The notes under the pieces were generated by a model. It had not been told where the DNA came from. It did no database searches and was given only the letters and a program-made list of their open reading frames with translations. A stretch of DNA of 64,000 bases from Pocillopora damicornis (taxonomy: Eukaryota). The DNA lies in NCBI RefSeq assembly GCF_003704095.1, contig NW_020846275.1, forward strand, positions 1 through 64,000, read 5' to 3'. This document shows positions 27,492-61,931 of this stretch, piece by piece. The position numbers and the translations under genes are program-made. How positions within the stretch are numbered: position 1 is the first letter of the stretch; each line of letters starts with the position of its first letter.

Positions 27492-30400
27492 ATGAAAAGT
27501 GGGAGGGTGATCAGCCTGTTCGTGGTTTGGTTACTGCTCTGTTTAGCTGTTTGGATTGAAGCAAGATACTCGAAGACGGTAATTATTAATCCATCCCATC
27601 TTGTAATAAACATATCTCAGTTCACCAAAATGCGTGCATTCGGAATAAATTCTTCTCTCCTTTATTCAAACTTTGATACGGCAAATTTATAGCATGTCGA
27701 TCTATTCCTGTTTTTCCAGGTAAAAGAAAGTCATCGCAGCGCAGAAGAAAAGCAAGGTAAGTCGATCAAAGCGAGTAAATCACAAAATTCTTACCAACAA
27801 GTGATCGGATTCACGTTGGTCTGAAGACTGCAGTCTACATTGAATCCGATTAGTGCTTATATCCTATTAAAAATATATCCCCGCATTTGCGAGGAACACA
27901 AAAAATAAAGAGATCTTGCTGCCCAGCTTGTCAGCAACCCGTGCGCAGAAGATTCCGCCAATTTACCTTTGTCGTTTGTCTCACGCACTGAGAAAACCTC
28001 ACCCTAAGGTGAGGAGTTGTATGGGTGGCTTTGGTCGAAAGAGTTATCATTTAGACATCTGGCCGGCTAGCATGACAAGATCCTTTTTCTTTTCTTTCTA
28101 GCACAATCCCGCACATGCAAAAAATCTCCAATCCTTGCCTCACCAGACACAAAGGGGAACTGTTTATTGGTGGATTTCCTTACGCTACATGCACTTACGC
28201 TAAGTGGTTAAACATTAAGTTTTATCGGCAGATAGTACGACTTCAGTGCAATGATAAACAAAGGAATCAATACATTCTGTCGGTCATTTTCTAAAAGTTT
28301 TGAAGCTTAAGGTCAACCGAATGTCATAGGGGACTATTTTGTGTCTTTTTTCACGTGCAAACGAAGATAGTCGCCAAGTGTAAAGAACCATTTGGTTTCT
28401 TCACCACGCAATACTAGCTTTGAGTAGCGCGCGCTATGTTTAAATAGTCCTGCTTCCTTGGATTTTTTTATTTTATATCGAGTACTCTGTGGGCTGTCCG
28501 TGGCGGCACGTTACCGACAGAGGTTATATAATTAACTGAGGTCCTCTTGAAACACGCGTTGAAAGCTAAATACCGGAAAATTTTTCAACACGCAAATTGA
28601 GTGACGGGATAAACTTGAAAGCTAGTGATCCCAGTGCACTATTTTTACTCCAGTAAAGGGAAGAACAAAGCTAGAGGGTTTTTCTTTGACTAAACGATTT
28701 TTTATTCGGTCAAAAGAACTCGGTTTTAAAAAAAAACATTCAAGCCTATTTGGGGGTTCTTGGCTTTACTCCATGTGTATTTAAGTTTCTTTCGAATAAC
28801 ACCCACTGCAAGTGACCTTTAAATTGTACATTGTAATTTAACCCTTTCGGTAGTAGTTACGGTTTCTTGAAAACAATGAAATGACGCAAGTTACTGCTTG
28901 GAAATGGAAGTTCATATCGGCGCAGTGTAGTATTCAGGTCCTAAAACGCAATGCGTTATTTGATGATTGAATCACGTCATAGGAAGTTCCCAAACATGTG
29001 TACGTTATTTGATTAAATCATGTAATAGGAAGTTCCCAAAAAGATGTGCGTTATATGATTTAATCATTACATATATTTTGCAAGCTTTTTCTCTCTAGTA
29101 ATACAAGTTGCAAAAAACTGATTGCGACCTGCATACTGGCAACAGAAATGCCTTACGTCTTGCAACTGAATAAGACAAAACTAAAACGGACGCGGTCCCA
29201 ACTACTTATGCACAAGAATGCTAAACGTCTTCCTCAGAAAGCCGGCTTACGATGATTCAAACAAGTAGTGTAGTTGATGATCTCGCATATGAACTGGTTG
29301 AAGACGAATCCGCAACATAAAAAATTTGAAACTCATAGCGTAGATTAACAAACGGTCGTTTTATTCGAATCAGTTATGTTGCGTGTCAATTCTAATTCGT
29401 GTTTTCTCACACTCGAGTGTTTCCCCAAATAATTAGGTACCTTAAGCAAACCACAACGGCGACGGCAAAGCAAAGAGGTCAATTTAATGAGTAAAACAAT
29501 AGCTCCACACGTGCGTTTTTAAGACTTGTCACGTCTCTTAGCCTTCCTCTGCCAAACAAAAACGTCAAATCACCAAAATTCGCGTGGTCCGAGAGCTGAA
29601 ACTCCGAAGGCCAATCATTGCAGTTTCATTCAGTTTGGAACTAAAAGCTGCTCGCATACGTCAAGCTAAAGTTCATGTAAGGTGCTGTAAGAGACGGTAA
29701 AAGCATCCGGTCATTCTTAAAATTATATGTAGAGATGTGGACTAATTTATTAATCGACGTGTTCCTTGACGTCGCCGCTACGTACCCTTTTTTTTTTTTT
29801 TTTTTTTTAAGGGCATAGCGCGGTTTTCAGTTATTTTCTTTCAAAAGCAGAAATTTCAAAACGATTGACACCAGAATTTGTCAGAAGTAAAAGCTTACCA
29901 AATGCGAAAGTAAAAAACAATTACAGAATATCGTCATTTCCAGTCCCCGTGAATTCCACTAACCACAATTCTTTTGAGTCTGTGGTTAGCTGTTAGTGTT
30001 TAAATTAAAACGTTTACGCACATTAAGTTTGCTTTAACGAAATTCCTCCTTAGAGCATGTTATGCCAAACCACTCATACCAGAGCATCAAGATATTCAAA
30101 AGATATGGAAGTGCCATTGTTTCTAGTGAGAAGAGGCGGCAGCACAATCTTAGAATGTAGTAGTGCTCTTATCTTCGCGAAGTTGCGTAATTTGTTTTGG
30201 TATGGGGTATACAACAGATTCAGTGTTATAAATGGATGAATTAGAGGGTTAAAATGAAGACCATAGATCATAACTTTTATGCTTTCATGCTCCATTTCTA
30301 CCAGTATCGGAGCTGGCGTTCAGTCCTCTGATTTGCTTATTGGTATTGAAAGATGAGAATGACTTAACTGCTGCAGCAAATCTTATAAAAGTCTGACGTT

Positions 30401-33400
30401 ACAAGTGCACGGTGCATTTCATCAGAGGAAAGGGCGAATCAGACAAATTTTCTGCGGTATACTTAATATATAATGTTCAAACCAGCGCTAATGTTTAAAC
30501 CAGCGTGCACAATCCATATATTTCACCTGGCACTATCTACAATGACAGGTTAAACATGATGTTCGGACATGTTTCAGAAGATTATTGTCGCTTATGTCTA
30601 TCTTTTGTCAATGAGAGGCAGGATCATGTGTAATGTCCTCCTAGTTGATTCATTTTTAAATGCATCATCATTTCCGAATAATTTATTGGATTATATGTAT
30701 GAATTATTTCCTGAACAAGCTTTACCAAACGGAAGTAAGTGGAGTGGACAAACAACTGCTGTTTCAAAGATGGATAATTAGAGTTTAGACGGCCAAATAA
30801 CTGGAGTTCATAATCGAAGGTTCATGAAGACCACGCCTTAAAGTGCTGGCTACAGTGCCATAATGACCTGCCATTACAAGTTTTTCTCTGATTTCCAATT
30901 TCCGCATTAGACAAAAGAGGTCATCAAAACGCCAGTAAATATTTCACTCACAGCCAAAATATCTTTTTTGAAAAAATATTTCTGGCATGCTTTTGTCTCA
31001 TACTGCACAATCCTTTGCCGACGCTCATTCACGCCTCTCCGTCCCATCATCCTCACGTCTACTCCTTTGTGACCATGCATAAGAAAAACTTACTTTAGCG
31101 TTTTTCCGTTAAACGGGTAAAAGCTAACGAATGGTTAACGGACGGATGATAGCATGTAAACTGTTCTGGCGAACTTGCAGGAGCTCAATGAAATGAGCGG
31201 TTTGATCATTGCCAAGACTGTCTCTGAAATTCCAAGAGCAATCTTTTTAGTGGAGATCGTTATTTATCATCAGATGCAAACTCTCCTTTGCTGTGTAGCC
31301 GCCGAAAACTTCTCAAAACCAGTTCCACCTGAACGAAAATGTAAACTTGTACTGATCTGAGGACAATATCATAACCATATAAACCGGATTGTACTCATGA
31401 TTGATACCTACGGATAAAATGAGCCTCTTTGAGCCTTTTGAAAGATCTCCGCAAAGTCGTTGAATTTATAAAGCATATCTAGCCATGGCCATCGATGGCT
31501 TTTTTGATTTGAAGGAGTTTTAAACATCACAAAGTTGATCTTAACGCGCGAAGTCTTGAACAAATACCTCCAATATCGCTAAACCTTTCTGATGTGCTTA
31601 GCAGATTGCTTCAGGAAATTGGACCCCTCCATCTAGAGATAGCTTTTCCATCTGTCTTTTATACAAGAGAAAAGGCCTTACGTATTGTCAGAAAACGTGA
31701 GAAAGACTTTTCAATAAGTTGGCTCTTGTGTGTCATTGATTAATTCGTTGACTGATCTGCTGAATCATTTTTAATAGATTTCTTGATCAAAACATTGGGA
31801 GAGTTTGACATCACTTACCCAACTGAGTTAGATCACCGTGATGAGGTGATCGATCATGTGACAACCCTTTCCAGCCATCGACGTCGCCGGAGGAGCCTGA
31901 CAGAAGAAGCTGGGCCCATCATCTATCAGGTATCATTAGACCCTTTCCAACAGTTGCTCCACCTTAAGTAGGAATTGTCAGAATACTCATGTGACTCGCA
32001 CGTTGTAACTTTCAAAACTTCAAGCATAACTTATTATATTGGGATAAACGTGCAAATCTGCCTTGAGCATGAAGGAAGGCGTGGTACAGTAGTTTGGTAA
32101 GGTAGAGGTATGTTATGATGAGAAGAAAAAGCTTAAAAGGAACGAGGATGGGAATGAATGGAGAGGACTGAAATTAAAACGGATTAAATACTTATAAACC
32201 CAAGAATAAAAAACTGTGACATGACGTTAGTAAGGGTTTTGTTTGTTAAAGGCTACTTACATACTTGCACTCAGAATGAACCTATGCTTGAAAGTGTTAG
32301 AGGCTTACCAGAGAAGGCGTACGGCTTGGTTTTCAACCTGGATTCGTTGATTTGTCTACCCGTCTATCTATTGATCATTTAGATTTTGTTTTCTTTTTTT
32401 TTTTGTTTCTGTAGGTCCAGTTTAAAGGAAAGACTATTAAATTAAACCTACGAATAAACACGTTGCTTTTCGGATCAGATTTCACTACCGAGCGATATAA
32501 AGAAGACGGCACTATTGAAAGAACCAAATCCTCAGACCTTCACTGCTATCTTGTCGGCGAAACAGAATCATTTTACAGTAGCGTGGCTATAAGTGATTGT
32601 GATGGACTGGTACGTATTCTACTCTCAAGGATCTACGCTTGATCCGATAATTACAACTCGTTCGCTCTTACTGTAATGATTCGATTTAGCACCCGGAGCG
32701 CTTATTTACTTAGGGTACTTCAAGAGAGGGCGCTTATCAGGGAAAGGTGCATTCTCTCTTTTGAAATAGCACAGTGTGTGAAACAAAGTTCTGATGTTTT
32801 TTCAAAATGGAACATTAGTAGGTAATGTATAAGTAATGAGGTAGCCATCCTAGGGAGGAAGGGAGTGTGATAAGCCTTGCTTATCTGAAAGGGCATATCA
32901 TTACTATTTAAAAAAAAAAAAGAAATGTTAGCTTGGAGTACTCAAGGTGACACAATCCAAATTATGAAATAAAGAAGAATAAAAAAACTGTTGGTCAGAA
33001 AAAAAACGTTATTTCCAATCTTTTTGCCGTGAAAAAATGAAGCTTTGTTTCTGCTTTTTACCAGCCGTTGATTTACTGGCCGACGATGTTAAGGAGTTAT
33101 TTTGACGGGTGGAACGCGCTTTAGTGGCCGTTTTCGTTCTAGAAATATTAACATGACAGTAAGATTGGGACAGTATGAGCTTCCTTTGGGAATTAGGAAC
33201 TGTAAGGCCGTGGCTAAGGGGGACCGCTTTTGGATGTTTGACTTTACTCTTTTTAAAAGCTTCATCGACTAGAACTTCTTGTAATAAGAATCACTTCATG
33301 AATCGTCAGTAAATAGCTTTAGAGATTATAACCCTCTAGTTAAAAAAAGGAAAATTTCTCTCTCTTTTCCAGGCAGGAATCATAGATCTCGGAAATGACA

Positions 33401-35551
33401 CAATTTATATCGAGCCTGTGCTTAACAAAAGTCTGGTGACGCATCGAGGCTGGATCAGACCAGGAAGACCTCATCTGATGTATAGAAAAGCTGTCTTAGA
33501 AGAAGAAGATCCACATAACTTGGAGTTTGACGAGTTTCAAACGGAGGACTACCCTACAGGACTGAAAGGTTTGTCGACAGATAAATGCCCCATTCTATAT
33601 TTTTGAATAATAAATAAATTAATTCCTCTTGACAAATAAGCTGTAAACACTAGTCTTATTTTTTTGACTAGCATATAAAAGAATAATAGAACTATTGCAT
33701 CGAACCTATACAAAGAGTTCTTTGCAGAAGCTTTTTGATTGAACTTTGTGAAACGAAAATCATACTTTTGAGAACTAGAAATCACAACAAAGCAAAATAT
33801 TTCAAGGAACCATTGAGAATTCAAAGCAAAAACATTCAATTGTTTGAAGCTCGGTAAAGAGGTATAGATCAAGTCGTCATTGGTGTGATTTAACGTGAGT
33901 TTTCCAGACCGATCACGGCGCGTACTGAGGAAGAAAATTAGAAATTGCTCTCTGGATTCTTAAACAGATATAGCCTTTGAAGCAGATAATCAGATAATCG
34001 GACAAATGTTATGTCAGTGCAGGGGCGTTAGCGCGAGTATTTAAAAAAAGTCTCAGGTGAGGAGTGGCGCGCTATAGTGCGTCTCTACAACTCGCATTCC
34101 ACATACTGGGTTATCTGAGCGCCTCAGCAGCAAAATATCTATCAAAAGTTACTCCATTTAGGACCGATAGGTTAAACACGACAGTTTCTTCGTGGTCCAC
34201 GTCCCCAAAATCTTTATGTAACCATTTCTTGAAATAAGAGCAGCTGTTGTTTTGGTCAGAACTATTCTTGCTAATCGTTTTTGGCGCCCAGACGACGTGT
34301 ATTTAACATTCCAACGTAAAAAAGGGGAGTGATAAAAATAAATAAAGATAAAAAACAAACAAACGAATGGCGATTATCCCAGATTACGACTTTTCAAAGA
34401 AGGAAAAAAATTTTTTTTTTCATCACATTTCAAAAGGAGACTATTGAGGCGATGATAATTCTCTTAATTGAATAATCGACTTCGTTGAGTTGTGGAGTGC
34501 CCCAGTTGTTAAAAAATTTACACTTTCTCCTAAAGCAAAGCAGGCTGGATGATACGCATGACAGAATCATGACAGAATCATTTCCGTAAACTAGCGCAGA
34601 TATTCCGGTGTGCTGAAGTTGATGCAGTCTAAAGTATGCTGGCCCGTTAATAGACCAGAAAAGATAGAACAGAACTTTTTAGAAAGGACAACATATGTTG
34701 ATTGTTTTTTCTTTATTTGATCTACACATGTAAAGCTATTTAACCAAAGTCAAATTGTCCGTATTATGGTCGGCGGATAATTCGAGATAATTCGTTTGAG
34801 TCAATCACCCGACGACAAAAAGTTGAACTTTTGCTTTCAGTCATAGCTTGCATTATAAACACGGGTTTTAGACGGCAAGTGAAGTATAATCCGCTTCCAA
34901 TTCGATTTGTCGAGGAACTTTAGTTTGTCGTCAATTCACAGGGTGTTACCGTCTTGCCGACAGATCCGGATAAACTCCTCATCAGACTGATGACTAGCCA
35001 TTAATTATCTAAATCTTAACATATCACACAAGCATTATTTCCGATGTTTCCGATAAGAAGGCGGAAATGTTGATGCGGTGCGTTTATCACAAAGCTTTCA
35101 AATAGAAATGATCGGCACTCTCTTTACCGTCGCTATGTTCATCATAGAACGAGCCATTAGTATAGGAATTATAATCCTCTTAAAGGAGGAATAAGCTCCG
35201 AAGTCTGGGTAATTTTTTCATAGTTAAATCAAATAAATTCTATTTTGACCCACCGATGACATCCAAATAAAGAAAGAATCGTTGTAGGCAAACTGCAATT
35301 GCAGTAATGGTAGAAAATTAAAGAAGCATTCGGAAAAGAAACCCAGGCGGCGATGGGATGCTAACCTGCGCCTGCGCCGACACTACTTGGTTCTTCATCT
35401 TCACTATTAAAAATATGTACAGAAATTTACTTGTTTCTGTGTTCTGAAATGCTCGAGGGTTATTGTATTCAAATGCGCAAAATTCGACTCTGGACGCCAC
35501 CAGTTTGAAAACAATTCAATTAGATAAACGGAGAGTGAATGTTCCCGACGC

Positions 35552-35600
<49 letters not shown>

Positions 35601-38600
35601 GTATTTACGCGAGTTTGAGTTTGACCATTTCGCCAGTTCTTGTTCCATATTGTACGTGTAAGTTGTAAAATTCGGAAGTTGCCGAGAATTTGAAATAGGC
35701 CAGTTTCTATTGTGGTATTTGCTAACTTTTGGGGAGAAGCTATGAAATCAAAACAATGCCCTGTGAAATGTCCTCACGTAGATGGTTTTCCTTTGAAAAA
35801 GAACAGACCATTCATTACTGAGTTGTAAATACATGTTTAGTGCAGTTTGTTAATCAATGGTTGGCTTGTTGAGCCGCCTCGCCGTAAGCCTATGAATTCC
35901 CCACCCCGCCTCCCCGAATCAATAGCATTAAAATCATCATCATCATCATCATCATCAACTTTGGGCCGAGTGATTAACGATTTAAATTTAAACTCTCGTA
36001 TCTTTTGTCTAGCAGTCTAGACTGGACAAAATAACTAGTCTCTTTAAAAAAATAGCTTTGGCTAGTCTAGTTTTAGGACATTTCTTTTGTTACGTATTTT
36101 CCTCATGTATTAATTGCAGATATGCTGTTGTTGTGTGCTGAAGATTGTTGCTATGGCATGTTTGTGCAGTAATGACAGCATTCCACCCTCACCCTCTCCG
36201 CCGTTCCCCCTCCCCCCCCCACCTAAACCTTTCTACCTTTCTTTCAAACAGGGGTCGAGTCTGTTCTTAATCCTTGTTTTCAGTTGTTCGAAAGGTTCTT
36301 TCCTGGGTTAAGGAGTTTTTTACCACCACAAAAACCGACTCTCTATAATCTGATTTGAAGTGGAGACAGTGAATGCGCAACAAAAATTCCATTTTTTTTC
36401 ACTTGTTTTATTTTGCTTTGGTGATTGCGTCACTTGAATTAAACAAGTGTTTAGTGCTTTACAGCTTCACTTTCTAGTGATTAAACTAAGTATGTCAAAC
36501 TCCACTGGAGCATAATTAACAGGGAAATTCATTCAGGGATGTTTCACTGATGACCTCCACACATATTACAACATTTTCCTTGTAGCGGACGGAGAACCGA
36601 ATGAAGCCGAAGCAGCTCGCTCTTTAAGCGCTTACCTTCAAATAATAAACCGCTCAGGCCGAGCGATCAAGGTGATCTTGATATACATTCATCATTCTTG
36701 AAAATGGTTGAGAAGGCTGCCTTTAGTTAAAAGTGGCTTATGAGACCACTCCATTCATGAAGAGTACTCCATTATCAATAAGATTTCCACCTAGATCGAT
36801 CAATTCTGAAATCGTCTCCTATAATCTAAAAGAATGAAAAAGAAAAAAGGGTAAAACCATCAAAAGATAATTAATCCTTTGTGCATTTACCGGTCTGGTA
36901 GGTCTATACCGGAAAATGGTAAACGCCTCTGATATCAAATGTAAATTGTCGTCACCCATGATTTTACTCGGTATATGTAACCTCTTTATATTCTTCACAT
37001 TTTCATAAGGGGGCTCGCTTAATATTTCATTTGACGTTCCCCTTGTAACGCTCACTTCAATAACTATTGTTTAATGGTCAGTTAATTTACTTATCCTTCG
37101 CTCTGACGAAGGGGAAACTTTCGAAATTTCAGCTTTAGAAACTCTTTTAAGTGGCCATTTTACATTATCAACTCTGTTTATAAAAACCAAATTGTCTTGT
37201 AATAACTCTCACCGACGCAGCACCACAGTTTTTGTAGAAATTTAACATATTTAGTTCACTTGTATGTCAATCGATCAAGGAAGTAAGCAATCGGCCGTGA
37301 CCAAATAAACAACGGTTGACGGGGCATTTTTTAAAATATGGTATATTTTCATTGATGACAGATGTATTATGTCTTCGAGGGAAAAGAAAAATACTTTCGA
37401 ATCTTAACAAAAGGAGCAACACTGGAAATAGATACTTATACGGTTCATAAATGGATAGCTAAAGACTACGACACCGGCAAAGCGCTCTTTCTCAATAGGC
37501 AAAAGACTTACACACCACCAACAGGCACCAATGCTAAAAAACCAGCCAATGTTTACGTCACTATACCACGTGAGTTACACACCAAGTTTATCTGTCTCGA
37601 CAAGGACATATGTGGAACACAGCAGTCAAACGTAGGGCATGCACGAGCTCGAGGGTATCAGTTTTGCGCGCCTGCTCGCCAATTTCCCGCGCGAAATTTC
37701 CAAGGAAAAGATATAAAAATCGCAAAACAAGAGTTAGAAATCTGGAAAAGCAAAGAAAATAGGGAGAAGGAAAACTCGAGACTTATTGAACACAAAACTT
37801 ATTCAAGTAAGCGCTTCAGGTTAATTTACCGTTCTGTTTTGAGCCTCACCAAAAAAGTTAAACACTTCTCAAACACCATGATTTACTGGCTTGTGTGGTT
37901 GTTTGCAACTTTTGTGAGACAGCGTGATTTCGACTGCATGAAAGCACGCCACCCAGTCGGTACAATGTTCGTACATTTTCAAATGTTTGACCGTTGTGTT
38001 CATCTAAAGGGGTTGGATTTATTCGCTTTGCTAGATTTATTGTTTAAGAGAGATAAGATAAGTCGTGAGAAATCATTGGCCCATTTCTGCCCGTCCAGAT
38101 TATCCTTGTTTTCACAGAGGAACACATGTAGGTGTTGTTCTAAAATGAATTTTAGTCTATAAAAATAGGAGGATTAGCCTCTTAGGACTGGTATTTAGCC
38201 CTTGATCCTCCATTAACCTTTAAATCCTTGCTGTGAACCCATCCAAGTCCATCGATGGAATCTACACACCTGTCATTCTTTCCACATGACGCAAGCATTT
38301 TGTTATTTTTTAGCTGGACTTAAGCTTCCCGACCCCTTGGGTCCCGCTCAGCCAAACAGCCACATAACATTCATCAACAAATCAAATCGCTTTGTGAAGG
38401 TGAGGCGTCCTTTGCGTCTTGTCGATATTATAAATTAAAGGAACAGGAGTATATTTTCCTTATATTCAGTCAGTTCTCCTAAGAAAAAATAACGCATTGT
38501 GAAACAGGTAAGTGAGTTATGAGAATAAAGTAGATAAACAACTGAGGGGTGTCTTATGTTGTCATCTAATCTTGAGCCAAGCTTCTGCTTTACTGGAAGC

Positions 38601-41600
38601 ATAATAAGCAGGCTCGAGAACAGACAGCGTTTGAAGCGTTTAGTGTTAAATCCTCTAATAATTGGCTAAGAACTCGTTCGAAAATTTTGACCATCAGTAT
38701 TCAGGTTTCCATAGTTGACCATCGAAGAACCAGGAATGTTCATTGGAGGTTCTTCTTTTTGCTCCCAAACCAAAAAGAATGCAAAATTCTGCCCTGTGTT
38801 GCACTACACTGTTTCTTCATTCATTTCTTTGAATCTGTTTGTTTTCGGTTTCCCTTATGTTATGCGCAAGTTCTGCAAGATCTCAGACATTTTTCTTATA
38901 TATGATTTTCCTCTGTAATGTACGTAGCGATGGAGGCTGCCTGTACTTGTGCCTTTTGTTTGATCGTGACCGCTGCATGATAAGTAATCCTCGCGGAAGA
39001 GTCTCTTGACCTTGCCTAATTTTCTTTCCTTTCCGTCTCTCGAAGATTTACTACATCGAGGATGGCGAGACGAGATTTTTTAGCAATCTTTCTCCTGCAG
39101 AGGAAATGCATGTGAATACTTTCACCTCTCACCGGTGGTTTGCCAAGGACCTGGATACAGGCAAATCTTTCCTTGTGAACGGAGAAAAACAGTACATCCC
39201 GCGGGAATCGCATATTGATCGTCGGATACATGTTGCCATTACCGTGCCAAGTTCGTGATATTTTTGCCGTAAAAAAATTTATTATGTTTTAAGTGACCCA
39301 AAGTTGTAGTTGATGATAATAACAATGATGAGGATATTGATGCTGATGATGATAACGATACTGCTGCTGCTGCTGTTGATGATGATGATGATGATGAGCA
39401 GCTGCTTCATTACGTTTCCCTAAAATATTAAGATTTTTTCGAGATTTTTTGAAAGTGCCTCTCACTTTCATCTAAGCGTTATACACTTACACCAGAAAGC
39501 CAGCTCTAAGAAGCACGGACTGTACTCACAACTTGGTGCTCTCATGTTAAGAGAATATCAAATATTTTCAGCGTACGTACATGCTTACTGACCCTACTGC
39601 TTTGTCAAGTAAATAAATTGCGGTTTTCATTGGTAAACGATCTCCATTGGTTTCACAGGTACAATCTCCCTGCCCGATATGAAGTTCCCTGAAATGGTCA
39701 AAACCCAACCAAAATACATAGAAGTAATGGCAGCCGCTGATAGTTCTGTGGTGAAGTTTCATGGCAAAGAGAAAGCAGAGAAATATGTCTTAACTTTGAT
39801 GAACATAGTAAGTAAATTCCTTCATATCTTTTCTATTACCTTTTTACGGCGGCAAATTTATATTATCAACTTAGTTGATAAGACAAAATTATGTTGCTAT
39901 ACCCCACAGATAGAGCACCGAAGTTTCTTTAAAAACTGATCCCCTTATACCAAAGGAGGACTGTTACCGACAGTAGTGACTACCATTTCTACAAACTGAG
40001 AGGAAGTCACTATCAGAGAGTCAAGACTTGACTTGACTAGAGTACCTTGACTGATGATAACTCCCGCTCAGGATGTCGAACGTCAGTTGCCGACAAAAGC
40101 CCATTTCAGAACTGCTCTCACCCAAAGACACCCATCACGATCAAGTGAAGCTAATTAAGCTGGTCCTTTTGTGGGGACTCTCTTTTTGCATCAGGGAGGT
40201 GGATGTAAAAGAATATCTCCATAGTGATATAACTAGCCTGTACCTGTCCTTTTTCAATGTTTCCTTTGTCACAGGTCTCCAGAATATTTCAGCACAAGTC
40301 AATTGGTGCTCCTATCTATTTTGTGGTCGTTAAACTTGTTCTTCTGGAAAGAGACCCGGTAAGACACGATTCCTAATAATTTATAGAGTGTGAAGTTTTC
40401 TTAAATTACGTTCACTTGGACAGGATGGCACGGAAAAAAGCTTGATTTTGCTTAACTTTCCCGCTCTAATCGTTGAATCACGTTTTCACGTTTGTTTGTA
40501 AATTGTTTCCAGTGCTGCCCCTTCAATAATTTCATCATTCAGTATTGCGAATGAAGGAAAGTATTCGTGCATATCCGGATATGGACGACGCGATTCATAT
40601 GGTAAATACGTAGTAAGCTGCCATGAGAATGAACAGAACATAAGGATTAGGGCAAGAGTGTTTTTTGCTCAAAGGTTCAGATCTCACCCTAGAAATAACG
40701 GTTCCAGCTGATTTTCATACGCTCGTATTCTGCACGTCCGATGCGCAAAGAAGGGACCGTAGTTTAACCCTTTACCCACCAACATCAGTATGCATATTCT
40801 CCATACTGTTCTCTATACATTTCCAAAGAGGCTAACAGGGAGAATTTGTGTAACAGTCAAGAGCTTCTTTAGTTGATAATCATCTCTTCTCTTCTCATAA
40901 CTTTCATGTTTGATTCAGGGATGATTAAGTAAGGAGAAACAAGATACTAGTCACTCTTGGGGGCTAAAGGGTTAAGCAATCAGGACGGCAACGCTTAGGA
41001 AAACGTCGATTAAAAAAATTAATCTGTGTTTTTCTTCTAAGAATGTCTAGAATGAGTTGATGCGATTACCGTCTTAAACGGCGTCAGACCTCATCTTCAG
41101 CATAAGATTTGTGAGCAACGTTCAGTTCTAAATGGAAACATAATAATTAGCCGTCAGTGCCGCGCAACTTTTGGTGATTTTACGTTGTTGTTCTGCAGAG
41201 GACGGCTAGGAAATGTACAAAATTTTAAAACGCACATGCCGTTGTGTGCTTATAAAATATTCTGTTTTGCCACTTTCTCGTTGCCGTCGCTATCGTGGTT
41301 TGTTTAAGTCTCTGCTTAGACGTTTTGATCGAGTTTGCAGCGTGGGCTGTGTAAAGTTAAAACATATTGCAATTATTTGTTGTATCTTAGAGAGAAATCA
41401 AAATTACCGGCAAACCGATGGCAAGCTTATCAAGTGTTTGTTACTGGGGCCATAAGACGAGGAAAGGCTTTGACAAAGTCGACAAAGATTTTTACGATCA
41501 GACCGTGTTTCTTACAAGGTAACAGTCTTTCACTTGTACCATATCATATGTATATTGGGTAATCTGAGTGAACGTAATCTGCGAAATGTTACTTGCGTCT

Positions 41601-44600
41601 GTCTTTAAGGGCATCGGTAGTCAGGGGCGACGCCTACAAAGAAGCAAACTCCGATCCCAGTTGAATAAAATACATATACGTTACTGTCACATTTGTGTCA
41701 CCATTAAAGGGACAACTCTCTTTGGAGGACTTCTGGCGGATATTTTCATTTATTCTTACAAGATCGTCGAGGCTTTCCGAACACTTCGGAAAGTGTCACT
41801 CATATGTCACTACACTGCTTTCGAATGTGTATCTTATTATTGGGTGCGAACCGTATCTTTAGCAGGAACTCTTAATTGCTTATCGTGTATATCGCTTAAC
41901 TAATGTGCTTTTGTTTTGTATCTTTTATCTTTTCACAGAAAAGACTTTGGACCTTCAGGTACTAGACTTAATCGAAGCAGTTTCTTTCGACTGGTCTGTT
42001 GAGGGATGCGAACTTGAATGTGCATTCATCAGTATAGCTTTCATTGTCTTTCGTCATTAAAAACTGAATTCGAGCTAATTAGACCAATTTTCATCTTTGA
42101 TCTATTTTTTTTATTCGGAAGGCTTGTATCAGTCTGAGGTTTTCCTGTCAGTTGAAATTAATTATTCGATTTTGCTATGTTGACGAGAATATTATTATGA
42201 GAATCGTAAACGATGAAGGAAAACTGGAAAGATGTTCATAAGGTCTCCAGATGTGCCGGTTTCAAGTCTGTCATTGCCGCTGCTCGGTAGTGTAAAGGGT
42301 CTGACGCATGCAAAGCATTTATTATTGTTCTCTACCAGTGTTTAAATCATTCCATATCCAAACGTTTCAATAAGTACGAGTTTTAAACCAATTGAATTGC
42401 CGATCTCCAGGTTACGCCCCAGTTCACGGCATGTGTTATCGAGTACGAAGCTGCACTCTGAACGAAGAAGACGGATTCACTTCATCGTTTATCATCGCTC
42501 ATGAGACAGGACATACGTAAGTTGTAGCTCATAGCGCATAGATTATTGTGCATTTTGCAACATGCGCTGAATCTTCGTTACGCATTAAGCGTTGCGCATG
42601 TTATACAGTTTAAAGAGCTTGGTGTTTGCGTATATATATATTGCCCGTGAAGTTTCAGATCCCATAAACCTACTTTTCTAGTTACATAAACCAAAAAAAA
42701 ACACGATACTTTCTTATTATAAACAGACTAGGAATGGAACATGATGGAGTGAAGAACAACTGTTCTAATGACGTCATCAAAGGCAGTATCATGGCGCCTC
42801 TGGTGCGCTCCCGGTTTGACCGCTTTTACTGGTCTTCCTGTAGTCGGCGGGATCTGATTACGAAACTCAGGTACGTCACAGGATTATGTAATGCCATTTA
42901 TGATTAACTGGTGGGTTGATTTGTCGATTATTCCCAAAAATGAAAATATTTTATGCCTTATCATCTTACCTCGCATCAAATTACCCGTTAGCGTTTTACA
43001 CCATTTTATCTTAGTTCTCCTCCTCATAAAGAAAATTAGATTGTGTTTTTATAATTCTTAGTCACCTTAAAATTTTTTTCACTTTTTTTTCTTGGTGTTT
43101 TTTTTTTCGTAGAGCTCTTTGGTGTATAGATGACGTACCATTTAGAAATGAAATACCATACTTGAAGAAGCTTCCAGGCCAGATTTACTCTATTGATGAA
43201 CAATGTCAGCGTGAATTTGGTAAAAATACCAGATTCTGTAGCGGGGTTAGTTCAACTAGTTCATTTTGTGCGATAGAAGATATCGAAGGAACCGTAGGTC
43301 CATGATAAAACTCTCTTGGGTCTTAATGAGTGTCTTATGTGAGGTGATGGTTGTTTAGTTCGTGCATCTTGAAAAATAGGCGTATATTTGAGTTGTTTTT
43401 ATGTACGATCCCTGCCACGTTTTTTCTTATTCGTCTTTTTTTTTAGAGCTGTTTTCAATTGAGCGTCGAAAGTAATCCATGATAACTTTGGTTTTGCTCA
43501 ACTTCACTTGACGATTGTCTAGAAAACTGAGGCCACCCTCTCGATCAATCAAATTCAAAACTAAAATCAATCCTGATTTGAACAATCTCTTGTTTTCCTG
43601 CCTTTCATGCATTATTCCCGTTATTTCTTGGTGCTCTAATTGACTAATCAAGACCTTCGCTCAGACTGATTGAGGTTACATTGGTTTTGGTTTTTGGAAA
43701 CTCAGTGAAAACTGCTCTATACTTGTTCCCTTTTACTTTATTCTTGCAAATTGGGCGTCTTTGCACAGAACTATTGTTCTGACACTTTTTATGCTAGTTT
43801 ACATTTCAGAAACGACTGAAGTTACGGTGATGTAGCTCGGTTATAGTCCTGTAGTTGCTCTCCTTCGCAAATTGTAATTTGGATTTTTTTTCGCTTCAAC
43901 TTGGCAGATGAAGCGCGATCCGTGTAAAGAGTTATGGTGCAGCCGTTTGTCCTTTTCAACTTATAACAACCGCTTTTGTCAAACAAGACGTACAGCGGCC
44001 TTGGAAGGAACAAAATGCGGAGTTGATAAAGTGAGATATGAATTACGTTTTTCTGCTTGATTCTGATATATATTATATACAGCAAAAATTATACCGGTCA
44101 TTAGCTGCACTTGAAATAGGGAGGACTCTTGACACACATTCAAGAAAAATTCCTGCTTTATCAGTCTCTAATAAGCCCTTTAGCAGTTGCAAGAACCTAT
44201 ACGGAAGATTGATCAAATTGTCAGACTGCGTTTTGCCGATAAATAAGACCTTATCATGTCTCGACGTAATGCTTTTACTCTACCAGTTGTGCGCGTATAA
44301 TCCTTCATAATACTTACTGTTGTAACGGTTTTCTTCTACGCCAAAGAAAGGTCCGGTTGATGTTAAAATTTTATTCTAAAGCATAAATGTCACATGCATT
44401 TCCAACGAACTCAGCGTTCTTTCAACAGCTCTTACGTTGTCTCAATTAGAAGGCGATGATTTGGTACATATCTAAGTCAACCCAAGACAGGACTCTGTTT
44501 CTATATGTCATTTAAATAGCGACTGTCTGAAGAACAACTGAATGTTTCTATTCCCCAGTGGTGTCGATTGGGAGAATGCGTCCCGGTGGATGATGATGAA

Positions 44601-47600
44601 GATATCAGCATTCCTCTGCCTCGACCAAAAGTTAAACCGGTTCATGGTGGCTGGAGTGAATGGAGTGGACTCAGTGAATGTTCAAAACCGTGCGGTGTAG
44701 GGATCCGTTACCAAACAAGGAAGTGCAATAATCCAGTGTAAGTGTTGTCACAGTTTAAAGAATCGAGTCAATATTTAGCACCGTATGTTAGATTGAGAGG
44801 ATGTAACGGATTTCATTCACACAGTTAAGGTAAATGTGCACGATATGTCTTTTACGCACCCTACATTCTGAATTTCTAGAGAGTGTCGTTCATCTCTGGA
44901 ACAAAACCAGCCAACGGTCAAGATTGGCTGTTATTTTGAATATCTCTAACCTTTAAACAGAATATAAGCTTTTGCTGGTGTATTATGTGGTTATGAGTGC
45001 GGGTTTCGAGTTTGCCTTTATCGTTAGCTTTCAATTTTGGAGGTTAAGTACGTAACGGCCATACTTGAAGGGCGTGGTAAGTTCGGCCTGATGCAATTCT
45101 GCCAGTTTTCTGAACAGAATTAATAGCGGTAATTGAACTAAGTGCAATTTGGTCTGAAATAATGCTCGTAATTTCAAAATTAAATCTCCATTTGGTATGA
45201 CTCCTTATGTTTTTCTATAACTTTATATCATAAATTGAATTTTTGATTATCAGTATTTACAATGTAACTATTGTATTGTAGCCTTTTACTCAGAAGAAGA
45301 ATAATGATGTAGAAAATTAATTTATTTTGCTTGTAGGCCTCAAAACCTCGGGAGACCTTGTGAGGGGGAAGATGCTAAATTTGAACTTTGTAACACTGAG
45401 GTACGTTTTAATAACGTCTGTTGCGTCATCAATAGCATCGTAAATGCTATAATAACCAACCAATGACTGCTTACCGGCTAAAGATAGCAGCATGAATAAG
45501 AGCCAACGTATGCAAGTGACTTACATCTACGAACTTGAGGACTTTTAAAGTCTACCATAATGGCTTGTTTATCTTTTTCACCAGGACTGCCCTGGTCAGC
45601 TGTTAACGTTCGAGGCGTCAAGAAATGAACAGTGCAAGAGACGCGCACCTTTGATTTTACCAGAAATTGCCGGCAACTGGGCAGCACATGATATCTTTAA
45701 AGGTTAGATCTCACTTTGTTCAGGTTTTGTTATTGTTGTTGTCATAAGTTTTCCTGCATGCTTGCTTTCTGTTTTCCTTGTTTTTGTTCTTTTCTTGCGG
45801 AGTTCATTCTTCAAGAAGTTAAATTTTATCTTTAAATTCCTGACTTGCCTGCTGATATCAAGACCCTTTGGAAGTATCTTTTTATGTTTTTAACTCATAT
45901 TCTAAACAATTTCGCAAACAAAAAGGTGGAAGACATGTGGAATGAATGATAATATATATCGCGGGAAAAATGTATTAGTCTTGGTATGACCTGCTCTATG
46001 ATTAAACAGCCACGGCCACGGAAAAAAGGATGAATACTCTTGTAATTTTCAGCGCTTCTTACCGAGTACCATAGTTTTGGTTGCGTTTAATTCTTCTTTC
46101 AGAAATTTGCTCAATGATAAGGACTCCATTTCCCTGATGCCTCATGCTGTCGAATTAAAGAGTAAATTCATCAAACCTTATCTTTCCTGGCTAATGCTGC
46201 TTTTTCATTTCTCTTAAAATCACTTAGCGAGCATTGACTGTGACTTTGAGACTGGTCTGTGTGGCTGGACAAATGATGCTCATGATAATTATGACTGGAA
46301 GCACAACAAGGGTCGCACCCCGACCGCTGGTACAGGACCCTCCGCAGATCACACTAAAGGACGAGATGGTGAGGAAGGAAAAAACCCAGCATTTGGTTAT
46401 TACTGTAATCCTTACTTCTTTCCCTTTTCTATTCATTGCTATTTGGTAGTAAGGTAATTTGGTATCATCAACTGAGTTGATAACGTAAATTGGCCACCGT
46501 AAAGAGTTCCAAAGCGGACGTTTCGAGCATTAGCCCCTCTCAGAGGGAATAACGAAGAGCTAACGCTCTAAACGTTAGCTTTGAAACTCTCTACGGTGGC
46601 CAATTTACGTTATCAATTCAGTTGATAATACCAAATTACTGTGTTATACTCTCCCACCGACGCAGCAGTACAGTTTCTTTAGAAACTTACCCCTTCATTG
46701 TTATTGTGTAGTGTTAAGTTCTGCAAGCTGGTTAAAATGAAGACAATTTTGGCTCTTAGAAGTTAGTTGTTCTTCTGCATCCAATATTAGCTTCGTTTTC
46801 ATTAACTCTTTAATCCCCGAGGGTGACTAGAATCTTATTTCTCACTAAGGTATCATTACTGAATCCAACATAAAGGCTTATGAGAATCAAGGGAACGATC
46901 ACAAACTTGGACAGCTCTTGATTTTTTATGTCATAGATATGATTTTTTTTTTAAATTGAGGTATATTTTTTTAAAATATGGCGTAAATTTGCCTGGAGTA
47001 AGATCGGAATCAAATAAGAACAAGAACACTGAGCAGTTTTCTCATCAACAGGGTTATGTGACTGTTAACATATGTTTCTTCGTACTTTGTGTGTAGGCCA
47101 TTACGTATTTTTGGAGACGTCTCGGCCACTTAACCCTCGAGACAAGGCCCGTTTGATCAGTCCGTATATAGGACTTAAGGTTGCATGTCTAAAGTTCTGG
47201 TATCATTCGTTTGGTGACAATGCACATATGGGAGAGCTTCAACTTATCATCAAAAGCGATACAGTGAGTATAATTCTGAATGCACAAATGACTTACATGT
47301 GGTGATGAAATCAAATAATCCTTGCAGTTAAATCGCGTCAATTTGAAGTCCTTAATGTTTTTTTTTTCTGAACTCTTATGACCAGTTTGAGTTCAGAAGG
47401 TGTGTGTAAATAACGTAACAGCAACTTTTCGTCAAGGAAGAAAAGTTCCTCAACCCGATCCGAATCAATGTCAGTTTAGGGTGGTCAAGCGAAAGAAAAA
47501 AAAAACTTGTGTACCGTTCATAGGTTTCTTATTTAGTCTCGAGCCTAGAAACATGACATGTGGCTGCTTTTTTTTTTCAATCTGTTCTTTTCATGTTTTT

Positions 47601-50600
47601 CTTCTCTGACTCTTTTCAGAAAGAGATCCGGTGCCAAAAGAAGCAAAATTTTTGACATACTGTGCGGTTCTTTTCTTGATATTCTACGATAAACTTTTAT
47701 TCAAGCATTTCCTCATTTTGCAGGGCGAAAAAGTTGTCTGGGCGGTTAACAGGAATAGAGGAGACAATTGGGTATGGAGGCACGTCACGATATTCAGCAA
47801 GAGGCCATATAGGGTAAGTAGCGCTATAGGTTGTGCAGTCTGAGAGGTTTAACCCTCAAACATCCAAACATCAGTATGTGTATTCTCCATATTTTCTTTA
47901 TACATTTCCTAAGTTGCTGACATGGAGAATTTGTTTACTGATCAAAAGCTTCTTTCGTTGGTGATTATTTCCTTTATTCTCGTGACCACAATGTGTGATT
48001 CAGGGCTGATATTGTAGGGAGAAATAAGATGCTAGTCACTCTTAGAGCTTAAAGGGTTAAAGCATACTATGATTAGGAATGAGGTCATATCTTCATTTTT
48101 TAATTAAATATTAACTTACTTTTCTTCAACTGACTTTGAAGGTAACTTTTCACGTCTGATCATAGGCAACCACGCTATGTTTTTCTTATTCTTTTGCGCC
48201 TTTCGTTCCCAAGAACGAAAGCGACGTAGAAAGGAGTGACAAAGATGCATCCAAACCATAAGCCGGTCTCTTTAATTTCCCAAATCAATATTAGCAACGC
48301 ATGGCAGTCTTCGGCTTATCTCAGCACCTAAGCAATTCGGACAATCGCAAGGCTCTAGAAAAAAAAAAACGACAGATGTCAACGAGAGAACTTCGGAACC
48401 TATTATTAGCTAAGCGTGGAGCATGTAATCATGAACGGAGGCATAAAAGAGTTTACTCGCTGCCATTAATCAAGACTAACAGATTTAAGAACTCATTTAT
48501 TATGCGCAATGCAGTCAGGGCTACTTGATAGTCCAAATTTCATTATTATATTTGCCGTATATATATATATAGATTATCCATTATTTTTTTAAAACATGTA
48601 ATTCAGCCTCACGACTGCCAGATATTATTTTAATAAACGACTTGTCTCTCAAAAAAAATTATCTTTCAAACCGGTCTTCTTAATCCCTGCAGTATCTACA
48701 AACGTTTTTCATTCTACTAATTCGTTCTTGTTTTTATGTTACCAATTTTCCATCAATAGAGTGGCTCCATTTTTCTGCATATAAAACACACACAACCCAC
48801 AATTCCTCCATTCGCTCTGGAAACGCTCGAAACGGCAGCTTTAAAAACTCTTTACGGTGGTTAACTTAGATCATTCATACATTTGATAAACCCAAATTAT
48901 CTTGTAATATCCCCGCTGAAGTAGCAACACAGTATCTTTAGAAACTACTCCCTTTCTTGATTAGCGCATAGTCTCTTCCACACCGCTCTACACACATGTT
49001 CAGCCTCGTCACATCCAACGCCCTCTTTTCCTGAGAATAAGATAGCTGCGCAGACTCGGAAGTTGCTTGTTAGACATGAAGATGACAGATTTTCGAGCTC
49101 ATCAAGCCTCATCATTTTACCCATCATTTCATTGTTGCAGATCGTATTCCAAGGAGTGAGAGGTGACGGATACCTCAGTGATTTCGCTTTGGATGACATC
49201 TCACTTGAAAACAACCCATGTGGCCTGGGAATGATGAGATTCACAACAATTAACAACAGTATGTTCCTCTTCAGTAAAATCCACCCTCTAAGTAACATTA
49301 GAAGTAAATCTAATCGTTTCTGTTTTAACTGAATTGGGTGACTATGAAATGTTGCATGGTAACAATCTCAGTAAAACTTTTCTCTTTTTATTCGTCTGAC
49401 ATTTGTAGATAGACTGATATTAAGGGTGTTTCGACCACACAGTACATCATTTGCTAACGACCACATCTCTACAAATACCACCTCACTACAATAGCTACAT
49501 TTATTGTCCCGGCCGAAGGTCCATACATACACACCTCTCTACGACGACCACCTCTCCAGAAAGACATAGGCCTTTAGGCGCGTTCGAGCTGCGAATTACC
49601 AGAATATAACAGTCAATTAGTAACCGACAGTCAGGCGAAACGTGCGACGACTCACTCACTCTTGACGTTTGTACGTGGTAAAAACATCAGTGACTCACTC
49701 GGCTGCGCCTTAAGTGCCACCTTTTTGCTCTTACCACATGTTGACGCCATCTGTGATCTATTACTGAAAAGACTCACGACAACATAAAATCTATTTTTTA
49801 TCACCTTTCTCTGACAGCACTTTTTTTTTTCTTTTCTTAAGGTGTCCGTTGTAAGAAGGTTCGACTTTGAGTTAAGATTAGTCTTGTTTTCTCTACAGGA
49901 CTCGACCTCAATCCTTGTCAACAGTTCTGTGAGGCAACTGAGAACGGCAAAAGGGTTGATATCGTACCACTGGACGTCGAAAACGGAACCAAATGTAACG
50001 ACGATCTGACATCGTTTGATGTCTGTATTCAGAGTAAATGTCAGGTAAGTACCGTTTCGATCAGCGTAAGTGCTGTTAACCTTTAATTCCCGTGAGTGAT
50101 CAACACAGAATTTCTCCTTACATTATCACAACAATATCAAGCAGACAAGTGATGAGAACGAAAAAAAATATCAATCAGGGGATTGTTAGGTGATGCAATG
50201 CCAAATTATTAGAAATAATATCATAGGAATTGTTTGGCAGACAATGAGGAGAATTACTATTTAGATCATAGGATTGAAAGGGTTACGGTAAATAACTTCG
50301 TCATTCTCTTATTTATCCTTTTTGGGAGATACAGTCGCCCAATGATAAGCGAATTTAACTAATTGCGGATAAAACTTTTCCCGATCCACAGAAAGTCGGA
50401 TGTGATGGCATCGTTGGATCAAATAAAACTCTGGACAATTGTGGCGTTTGTGGCGGCGACGGTCACTTATGCACACCAAGTGAAGGATCCATCTCTTTGT
50501 TACCTAAAGAAGGTATTCTATCTTGCAATCGAATAAGGACCTTTCGTTCTTTAAAGAGTAGCGAAAAAAAATTAGTTCTGGTGGAAATCTTGCGGTAATG

Positions 50601-58841: not shown

Positions 58842-60145
58842 TTAAGATGAAGGTGTGGTTGCTGCAGCAGGTTGAGGCTTCTTTCTCTTCAGCACAAGTG
58901 GTCCCACATTGTCTCCTGTTTCTTTGTTGTGCTTGGTATGTGAGCCATCACACCTTGGGAACTTAAGATTAGAAAAAAGTGTGAGAGTTAGATTGGATTC
59001 ATTTCTCAGATGAAAAATAAAATTTCTGACACAGACCTTGCACACTACATACTCTATAATCTCAATAATAGCTTGGTTGCACATCACCAACTGTAAGTCA
59101 GCATCTCTACTGGTGTACTATTCTCGAGTGACCAGCTCACAAATACAGAACATTATGGGAAAAAAGAGTAACTAATGATTGTATGTTTAGATCATCTGAG
59201 TAAGGGTAGTCTTGAGAATAACTGTTGCCACATAAAGTGAGTTACATTTGGACAACCTGATTGGCAGTCTTCCAGGGCTATTAAGATGATCTTCTATCAG
59301 GTTTTCAATATGTCAATCCCTTCCACTGACAACAGTTCCTCAACAGATAACCCTTACTATGACAACCATACTGTATGATCCACAAATGTAGGAAACAAAC
59401 TTAAAATGGGGCTCAATTTTTCAGGGATTGGTTTACCTCCAATCTCTCATTTCAGTAACTTAAACATCAGACTCCTCCATGGATTCGTTGAGTATGACAC
59501 ACTGAGAGAAAAAAAATTCGTCCGAAGCGAGTATAATGCTCTAACTAGTGGATAGCACCCTCCCTTTGTTGATTCACACTGGGTATTATGTAATACTCTG
59601 TCTCCAACTTTTTGATATAGTGTCGTTACCGAACCCACCGCAGAAGGAAAAATGCTGTTAATGACAGCGAATCAATATAAAAAAGCTTGCAATCTCCCTA
59701 ACGAATGCCACATTAATACCAAAAGAGTCTGCAAGGTCAAATCAATTTCTGAAGCCTAATTTACCTACTCAACTTGTTTTGTTTAAAGCCTGTTGGCTGA
59801 TTTTACCTTTTTCGATTTCCAACAACGACAGAAAGCATGATAAGCTGCCTTCTCTGCTAAATCTTCAATCTGAATTGTATCAGCAACTTTCTCCTTGTCC
59901 TTTTGCTGTGTTTTGTTGACCCAGTCTTGATCTGGGGTCTTCTTCCCAGTGGGCTTCGATGCTGACCGCCGAGTAAACTGCTTAATTACGAGATAAATGA
60001 ACAACGATAGAGTGAGTAAAAGCGGTGCAAGCTGCCGCCATTCCTTTACCGAGAGCTTTAAAAATCCGCCGAAAGTAGAAGGAACCGGCAGAGATCGAAG
60101 ATAGTTTGGGAGCTGCACTTTGATTACACGCGAAACGGCTTCCAT
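58842..60145 (-). CDS. CISD2: CDGSH iron-sulfur (NEET) protein, CISD2/NAF-1-like, copy A, 2 exons, ~152 aa
   Basis: Exons 60145-59807 and 58961-58842. N-terminus [13 protein letters not shown], a TM helix, and the 3Cys-1His motif CRCWKSKK|FPRCDGSH, then ETGDNVGPL. Confidence 0.92.
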
Positions 60146-60630
60146 CTTAGAACGCGCTTCTGTCACGTGACCTATTAATTTGAATATATTAGTTCTTCTG
60201 CGTCCTTAAGAATGTTTAAATTGCCTGTTGCTCACTGTTTCCACTTGTGCACTGACATACTTGCACAAATGTGCGTCAATAGATCAGTTTTTGCAAGGCA
60301 GATTAATGAAGCTAAACAATTAGTGATGATACAATGACTTGACACAGTTTAAAAAAAATTTGTCATGATATTTATCAGAAGTTGATGGCTTGATGTTTCT
60401 TTATATGCCCACTTTTTAACTCTTTGTCGAGGCTCACCTGGTCTTCCCTTAGACTTAAAATGCTCTACAAGCTGGGTGGGGATAAACTTGACAAAATTTT
60501 CAATGAAGTCTGATCCAATGTCCTTCCAAACAATATTTTTACCAAAAATATCATCTTCTCTTAGCTCCTAGTTTACCTAGACACCTCTTTTGGAAAAGGA
60601 GAGACTAAAAATGTTTTATTTTTAAAGATT

Positions 60631-61390: not shown

Positions 61391-61931
61391 TTTGTTATGA
61401 TGAATTTGGAGTTTGGATTAATACCATGGTGGCTAAAACTTTACAAAAGTTAACTCATAAAATCTCTAATCACTGGCCTCAAAAGATACCCATTCCAAAT
61501 TGAATCATAAATTCAGAATCCATAACATATAGTAACAGTAGTCACTGCCCCACAAACAATGAAAGCCTAACTAACAAGATTGTATCTATGTTCATATTAC
61601 TTCTTAAAAAAACCCCCACATGGAACAATAAGTCAACAAAGAAGTGTCTACATCAGTTTTATTCAGTTGAAAAAATAATTAGTAGCTTCACAATGGAAAG
61701 TGTTTGTCAAATGCAAAATATTCGTATCTAAAATACATTCACTGTGATCTTTGAACAAACAGAGAAATTTTGAAAAAACCCAACACCTAGCCAAGGGAAT
61801 CAATCCATGCAACCTGCACACTAAAACTGGAATATCTACAAAATTTGACATTTACTTTAGACTGTCTACTTAAGACTACTTGCTGGCTGAGCACAAAAGA
61901 TTACATTTTGCAAGGCACAGAGGAATCTCTT

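Follow-up and report, generated by a model that had tools for sequence, protein, structure and literature searches.

To our knowledge, the VHL beta domain is met almost only as that half of a ubiquitin-ligase receptor inside the cell which reads hydroxyproline (Hyp). In pVHL, the Hyp site consists of W88, Y98, H110, S111, H115 and W117, where the Hyp hydroxyl is bound by S111 and H115, its carbonyl by the hydroxyl of Y98 and its NH by the backbone of H110 (PMC9528729). Among extracellular proteases, ADAMTS2 is characterized by the zinc motif HETGH (PMC12186411) and by a layout of one central and three C-terminal thrombospondin type 1 repeats (TSRs); its pro-domain is needed for correct folding and is separated from the metalloproteinase by a furin-like activation cut (PMC12362006). 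Analysis of a 64,000-nucleotide stretch of the coral Pocillopora damicornis (positions 1 to 64,000 of contig NW_020846275.1, assembly GCF_003704095.1; hereafter the window) revealed a gene that joins these two known kinds of protein: an ADAMTS in which two VHL-beta modules stand in tandem between the propeptide and the catalytic domain. The feature is real, expressed and conserved. No ADAMTS or other metazoan matrix protease with VHL modules is described in the literature that we searched (on VHL, ADAMTS and cnidarians or corals), in agreement with the initial annotation of the window, which had been made from the sequence alone and knew of no such architecture. A matrisome paper and its supplements hold no VHL entry (PMC12549020), a survey of hypoxia-inducible factor (HIF) signalling in cnidarians places the VHL beta domain in no other gene family (PMC9887271), and VHL-beta modules outside VHL are mentioned for bacteria only in the open literature searched.

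Each module is encoded by a short and a long exon on the forward strand, numbered here E1 to E4. Module 1 consists of E1 (36586-36671), which encodes a linker and the first beta strand with an F/I-x-N-x-x-x-R-x-V motif, and E2 (37362-37569), which corresponds to pVHL 86-154; module 2 consists of E3 (38314-38399), a Pro-rich linker followed by the first strand, and E4 (39046-39250), again equivalent to pVHL 86-154. In the short exons generally, the linker leads into a strand of the form F/I-x-N-x-S-x-R-x-V-K. The frame of E1 begins at 36588 and that of E3 at 38316, the first two bases of each of these exons finishing a codon; once the offsets were applied, the peptides quoted in the initial annotation were recovered from four exons lying exactly where it had put them. 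E1 and E2 measure 86 and 208 nt (294 nt, 98 codons), E3 and E4 86 and 205 nt (291 nt, 97 codons), and the bodies of the long exons comprise 69 (E2) and 68 (E4) residues. Read from the sequence, phase-1 introns precede E1, separate E2 from E3 and follow E4, and a phase-0 intron lies within each module. The exon ending at 33568 and the one starting at 39659 are themselves phase-1 compatible with each other; with these symmetric 1-1 phases and compatible flanking exons, the four exons present themselves as a duplicated, frame-neutral cassette.

Sequence and structure searches were performed exon by exon, so that the first strand, carried by the short exon, lies outside both AlphaFold2 models. On their own, the long exons match the Pfam family PF01847 with 24.2 bits (E 3.4e-5) for E2 and 28.3 bits (E 1.9e-6) for E4, both above the curated gathering cut-off of 21 bits, and a six-frame search of the 234-Mb genome recovers them at 25.5 and 27.8 bits. 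When a profile built from the two sequences E2 and E4 was compared with the sequences in PDB, pVHL was retrieved first (E 6e-4; profile positions 5-69 aligned with pVHL 91-154), and the neighbours of the modules in the ESM Atlas are VHL clusters (score 0.95), most of them bacterial. The AlphaFold2 models have predicted local distance difference test scores of 94.4 (E4) and 85.2 (E2). Among 48,161 PDB representatives, pVHL 86-154 is matched by the E4 model with Z 9.6 and a root-mean-square deviation of 1.4 Å over 68 of 68 residues (next best Z 4.8), and by the E2 model with Z 9.1 and 1.8 Å over 68 residues (next best Z 4.5); the first 50 Foldseek matches are all pVHL, at template modelling scores of 0.84-0.90 (0.88-0.90 for E4). 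The fold match should be read with the caveat that the AlphaFold2 input alignments included canonical VHLs. The likeness between these modules and the beta domain of human VHL (residues ~63-154) thus comprises the fold, a profile match above the cut-off and the same pocket positions, and by sequence profile and predicted fold both modules are genuine VHL beta-domain homologues. For the long exons, the resemblance that the initial annotation had seen by eye was found again by routes which it had suggested, the Pfam profile and AlphaFold with Foldseek.

The short exons were compared with a profile built from 16 single-domain VHLs, with 800 shuffles as a control. Scored singly, all eight short-exon peptides (from the window and its orthologues) align in register at profile positions 11-31, immediately before the region covered by E2 and E4, and five of the eight beat every shuffle. 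The E3 peptide of the window is one of these (7.7 bits); its E1 peptide aligns weakly (positions 16-31, 2.7 bits). The alpha/VHL-box domain (PF17211) was searched for in E2, E4 and the exon that follows, without a match at E up to 10 or 1, as expected from the initial annotation, in which this domain was missing; module 1 is followed directly by the linker of the second module, which in turn is followed directly by the catalytic domain. Unlike pVHL, the coral modules therefore lack the part that recruits Elongin C and Cul2, and they differ from it further in being present as two tandem copies embedded in a secreted protease.

A priori caution, and the fact that the corresponding proteins in public collections are mere read-through open reading frame (ORF) fragments of these exons, led us to ask whether the four exons could make up a distinct gene inside an ADAMTS intron or be an artefact of annotation or assembly. 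RNA contigs from four coral-sample studies were mapped on positions 33810-39809. The joint 36671>37362 is present in three runs (contigs X1, X6 and X16), and the joints 37569>38314, 38399>39046 and 39250>39659 in four runs each, all with GT..AG borders. Contigs X1 and X16, from two runs, additionally overhang position 36586 upstream by 28 nt that are identical to window positions 33539-33566, from which we infer the fifth junction, 33568>36586; it is not itself a listed joint. Of the five junctions predicted by the initial annotation, four are thus seen directly in RNA and the fifth as a matching loose end. A single 617-nt contig includes all four exons together with the 28 nt of the upstream exon, and summed contig depth amounts to ~100-360 in exon bins versus 4-15 in most intron bins. 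No alternative joints are listed among the RNA contigs, which drop rare isoforms. Since the joints tie the last propeptide exon, the four cassette exons and the first catalytic exon together, the modules belong to the ADAMTS mRNA; with splice joints on both sides of the cassette, and with the same linkage repeated in the DNA of other species, the chance that we are dealing with a nested gene or an artefact is negligible.

Orthologue fragments were collected by a profile search of 1.84 billion representatives; these exon-sized pieces derive from metagenomes of corals and from Logan assemblies. A matching exon order is displayed by at least three further assemblies, divergent and of coral type: contigs L001 and L002 carry E3, E4 and the catalytic exon in succession, L011 carries E1-E2-E3, L013 carries E1-E2, and in L004 all four exons are found within 1.1 kb. 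The searches for protein homologues of a full-length coral gene model yielded no spliced protein, only ORF-style exon fragments, a blank which proves nothing. Identity to L001 is 56% for E4 and 86% for the catalytic exon. Synonymous sites are saturated in this comparison (proportion of synonymous differences, pS, ~0.8), hence pN and pS are quoted here rather than dN/dS: pN/pS is 0.28/0.84 for E4 and 0.17/0.80 for E3, and pN of the catalytic exon is 0.07. These values indicate that the modules evolve under purifying selection, looser than that acting on the protease. In a tree of 42 domains, the two modules group together (94/80), and module 1 is a clade of its own (99/97). The duplication is hence old and confined to this gene lineage; it is older than the split of the coral lineages sampled.

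The looser constraint could be taken to mean that the cassette is a tolerated, nearly functionless passenger of exon shuffling lodged in a flexible linker. Its 1-1 phases would make such an insertion frame-neutral, the modules diverge faster than the catalytic exon, and other foreign modules, such as MAM in this very gene, have accreted to coral ADAMTS proteins. Against this stand a pN far below pS across a divergence that saturates synonymous sites, the retention of both copies in every sampled lineage, the clustering of invariant positions in the pocket (see below) and the constitutive inclusion of the exons in contigs of four studies. We consider a passenger role very improbable.

Exon-by-exon Pfam and PDB searches identified the usual ADAMTS set around the cassette, namely an M12B propeptide, a reprolysin zinc motif, a disintegrin-like domain, a central TSR and a cysteine-rich/spacer region, all on the forward strand. 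Upstream, a candidate first exon (27492-27633), for which Pfam gives nothing meaningful, was proposed from a script scan by its ATG, a signal-peptide-like hydrophobic core and a phase-1 GT donor. It is followed by two propeptide exons, 31778-31929 (Pep_M12B_propep 1-54; PF01562 21.7 bits, E 3.3e-4; splice sites taken from the sequence) and 32415-32609 (Pep_M12B_propep 59-91; PF01562 E 0.02; AG/GT borders taken from the sequence), and by the last propeptide/linker exon (33373-33568), which has an acidic tail and ends in phase 1, its 5' border being placed by the AG at 33371-33372. Downstream of the cassette, the first catalytic exon (39659-39807) is anchored by the joint seen in four runs, with a 3' end set by a GTAAGT donor. 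The remaining catalytic exons (42392-42907) encode the zinc site HETGH...MEHDG, with HETGH read in exon 42392-42520, and the Met-turn; they match ADAMTS4/5/1 in PDB (E 3e-5) and, weakly, Reprolysin, single catalytic-exon Pfam scores staying below the cut-off because the exons are short. The disintegrin-like domain (ADAMTS_CR_2; PF17771, 30.7 bits) and the central TSR (PF00090, 29.7 bits) occupy exons at 43162-44741, and cysteine-rich-domain exons (ADAMTS_CR_3, 18.6 bits) extend over 46218-50595. The C-terminal part (52921-56413) comprises three TSRs (TSP1_ADAMTS 18.8, 43.6 and 25.5 bits), a MAM domain (66.7 bits) and PLAC (24.7 bits, slightly below its cut-off of 26.4). Two MAM domains were noticed in all, one amid the cysteine-rich exons (46218-49332; PF00629 36.8, 37.9 and 22.8 bits) and the other after the last TSR and before PLAC (54350-55373).

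With HETGH, one central and three C-terminal TSRs and a PLAC-type end, the backbone resembles ADAMTS2/3/14, as initially annotated; the assignment is by resemblance only, and PLAC is not exclusive to these three proteases. The domain order is the same as theirs (candidate signal peptide, M12B propeptide, HETGH reprolysin, disintegrin-like domain, TSR, cysteine-rich/spacer region, three TSRs and PLAC-type C-terminus), whereas the coral protein adds the two VHL-beta modules between propeptide and catalytic domain, adds the two MAM domains and has no furin motif where activation usually takes place. Taken together, the ADAMTS architecture of the gene and the VHL fold of its modules are, in our judgement, close to certain.

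What the modules may do is best approached through the Hyp pocket. HMMER mapping equates F12 of the modules with Y98 of pVHL, T25 with S111, H29 with H115 and W31 with W117; the counterpart of W88 is probably Y3, as aligned by MAFFT and by the structural alignment starting at pVHL 86. The ungapped HMMER register points instead to Y2 for W88, a residue that is Tyr or Phe in all copies. E2 carries the complete series (Y3, F12, T25, H29 and W31). The positions of W88, Y98, H110, S111, H115 and W117 are hence occupied in the modules by Tyr, Phe (or Tyr), Asn or Asp, Thr, His and Trp, all conservative substitutions, and the mapping given by the initial annotation (W88 to Tyr, Y98 to Phe, S111 to Thr, H115 and W117 kept) is reproduced by HMMER, MAFFT and the structural range taken together. 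Nine ADAMTS modules, on average 43% identical to one another, have just 9 invariant positions out of 68 (Y3, T25, H29, W31, D35, D37, T38, T66 and P68), and position 12, the counterpart of Y98, is Phe or Tyr in all nine. Finding four of the five pocket positions within this invariant set has a hypergeometric probability of ~7e-4, a figure that ignores the general conservation of aromatic core residues. Thr at position 111 is usual in invertebrate VHLs, and the canonical VHL of this coral has both Thr111 and Phe98, suggesting that the substitutions in the modules are the normal cnidarian state and not signs of pocket decay.

These observations led us to a tentative model, to which we give somewhat less than an even chance, in which the modules form a Hyp-reading exosite on a coral ADAMTS. 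Each module would keep a pVHL-type pocket, with Thr and His as hydrogen-bond partners and an aromatic cage of Tyr, Phe/Tyr and Trp, able to accommodate 4-hydroxyproline on an extended, non-triple-helical peptide. Because the stretch between module 2 and the catalytic domain is free of furin motifs, the two modules probably remain joined to the protease and could serve there as a bivalent N-terminal exosite or tether, directing the enzyme to Hyp-bearing chains or holding it on them; procollagen, unfolded collagen and other hydroxylated matrix proteins are candidate substrates. Taken separately, binding of Hyp peptides by the modules, as predicted from their residues, is a reasonable possibility without being the expected outcome, and a collagen-directed exosite or tether is more doubtful. 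A precedent for Hyp reading on collagen exists in pVHL itself, whose direct binding to unfolded collagen IV chains depends on 4Hyp (PMC7619536).

Among matrix proteases generally, the fibronectin type II inserts of MMP-2 and MMP-9 and hemopexin domains serve as collagen-binding exosites. The coral modules would be comparable to these in that a non-catalytic module stands beside the catalytic domain and, as proposed for the coral, may tether it to (denatured) collagen; their fold, on the other hand, is unrelated, and we know of no Hyp-specific pocket in those exosite modules. In its most far-reaching form, which we regard as rather doubtful, the model would make this gene an extracellular Hyp reader of corals: two pVHL-type pockets on a procollagen-type ADAMTS would recognize 4-Hyp on unfolded or non-helical collagen, so that proteolysis of the matrix would be directed or gated by the prolyl-hydroxylation state of the substrate and, indirectly, by its dependence on oxygen.

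Several points weigh against a Hyp-reading exosite. The T-x-x-x-H-x-W signature is the core of the entire VHL-beta family, bacteria included, so its retention alone is no proof of Hyp binding and may serve folding; Y98 is Phe in most copies, with loss of the hydrogen bond to the Hyp carbonyl. N67 and R69, first-strand residues of the HIF groove in pVHL, have no conserved counterparts in the short exons as read from sequence, and any preference for flanking residues must therefore differ from the HIF case. Furthermore, pVHL buries a Hyp presented by an extended peptide, and its pocket may not admit a Hyp that is part of an intact triple helix. The kinship with ADAMTS2/3/14 is one of likeness, and procollagen cleavage is a putative activity. 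Lastly, the modules may or may not persist in the mature enzyme: the N-terminal half contains a single canonical furin-type motif, five consecutive Arg in the early propeptide (31879-31893), far upstream of the modules, and the usual activation position has none.

We rank a propeptide-type role as the main rival and a ligand other than Hyp as the second. According to the former, the modules would act as part of the propeptide in zymogen folding, secretion or latency, possibly by docking on the enzyme itself or on a partner in the endoplasmic reticulum such as hydroxylated procollagen, and would be shed on activation, leaving no exosite in the active protease. They do sit in the propeptide-catalytic linker, the normal place of the activation site, and the ADAMTS2 pro-domain is required for folding and is removed by a furin-like cleavage (PMC12362006). 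Basic clusters also occur in the loop that precedes the last strand of each module: in module 1 of L004 (positions 344-550) its sequence is R-R-K-R, so that a canonical furin-type motif stands within the module, and in other orthologues it is basic and non-canonical. However, no R-x-K/R-R motif was found between module 2 and the catalytic exon, either in the window or in L001 and L002, and the conserved pocket suggests an external ligand in preference to a pure spacer or chaperone. On balance, shedding of the modules with the propeptide seems unlikely.

The second rival holds that the modules are beta-sandwiches for a ligand other than Hyp, such as a glycan or a peptide (Pro-rich and unmodified, or of another kind), and that the conserved motif is structural or adapted to that ligand. 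The company which the modules keep fits such a role: their closest non-orthologous relatives by profile include giant proteins of Rhodobacteraceae, a 316-aa bacterial protein with three repeats and a secreted protein of Owenia, their ESM Atlas neighbours are mainly bacterial, as noted above, and groove residues outside the pocket are not conserved. Yet all pocket positions retain a Hyp-compatible chemistry (a hydroxyl donor, His and three aromatics), and the pocket residues are as in the coral's canonical VHL, which presumably reads Hyp in HIF. We consider a non-Hyp ligand improbable, without dismissing it. No observation pointing to yet another kind of function was left unexplained by the readings considered here.

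Here a secreted matrix protease contains VHL beta as a constitutively spliced, conserved and duplicated module whose predicted Hyp pocket is retained. If that pocket works, the modules would represent a natural extracellular Hyp-binding module and a new substrate-targeting principle in ADAMTS and collagen processing; they would offer a handle on cnidarian mesoglea and skeletal-matrix biology, and a compact, disulfide-free binder of Hyp peptides as a reagent. VHL-fold Hyp reading would then extend from intracellular degradation signalling to the extracellular matrix. Even with another ligand, the assumed distribution of the VHL domain is corrected, which affects HMM-based surveys of VHL presence in corals.

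In the six-frame search of the genome, PF01847 is matched at only three loci: the ADAMTS gene, a canonical VHL-like gene on C3839 and, on C2604, a pair in tandem. The match is not shared by any further ADAMTS gene of the genome. At C3839:33520-33756 (minus strand; also L005 1420-1944 and 501-659) the beta domain is contained in one exon, scores 56-58 bits and has Trp88, Phe98, Thr111, His115 and Trp117, and an exon ~0.8 kb downstream gives weak SOCS-box/VHL-box matches (E 0.011 and 0.059); this is probably the canonical coral VHL. Its beta-domain exon lacks the internal phase-0 intron of the ADAMTS modules. The C2604 locus (65151-67096; L006 1324-1809, L009 1408-1827, also L010 7005-7457) matches VHL-beta twice in tandem (32.8 and 25.2 bits), with a single open frame for each match and, in one of them, Phe where pVHL has W117; ~2.4 kb upstream, the strand that carries them also has an open frame rich in Pro and Gly.

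Outside corals, VHL-beta repeats are found in giant proteins of Rhodobacteraceae/Paracoccaceae (P0004, P0064-65; 9-10 repeats, named 'VHL beta domain-containing protein'), in the 316-aa bacterial three-repeat protein, which carries a signal peptide, in a 973-aa protein of the annelid Owenia fusiformis with a signal peptide and at least four modules (P0021), and in a 783-aa protein of the rhizarian Paulinella chromatophora that combines SAM, TIR and three modules (P0016). With the bacterial and Owenia repeat proteins, the ADAMTS modules have in common a tandem arrangement without alpha domain, and signal-peptide-like N-termini occur in P0022 and P0021; those proteins differ in having 3-10 repeats and no protease domain. 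The initial annotation had further proposed that an intracellular fold was repurposed for the outside of the cell. This idea is weakened, both by the existence of VHL-beta repeats in bacterial and annelid proteins that bear signal peptides and in the SAM-TIR protein of Paulinella, and by the 42-domain tree, which does not resolve descent from the canonical VHL gene. The tree does not place the modules relative to canonical VHL, bacterial, Owenia or Paulinella modules, and no donor is claimed.

Some minor features of the locus deserve mention. Public protein collections contain read-through ORF 'proteins' corresponding to window positions 37362-38162 and 38687-39258 (P0062, P0001-P0003 and P0005), one cluster of which, 266 aa in length, has 305 members; they arose when genes were called in prokaryote style on the coral DNA of metagenomes, and would mislead homology searches. 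In the intron between E1 and E2, RNA contig depth rises to ~2,300-4,400 over positions 37010-37410 in all four runs, with many loose ends at 37113-37244, as would be expected of a short element that is transcribed and highly repeated. The intron after E4 includes a low-complexity, trinucleotide-rich stretch (GAT/GCT runs; 39302-39412) at which reads are cut. Elsewhere in the window, open frames at 529-1641 (forward strand), 59783-63085 (reverse strand) and 63224-63790 (forward strand) are without an obvious tie to collagen or prolyl hydroxylation; the neighbouring frames resemble an NHL/filamin-repeat protein, two CDGSH-type small proteins (C-x-C-W-x-S-K-K) and a membrane transporter fragment.

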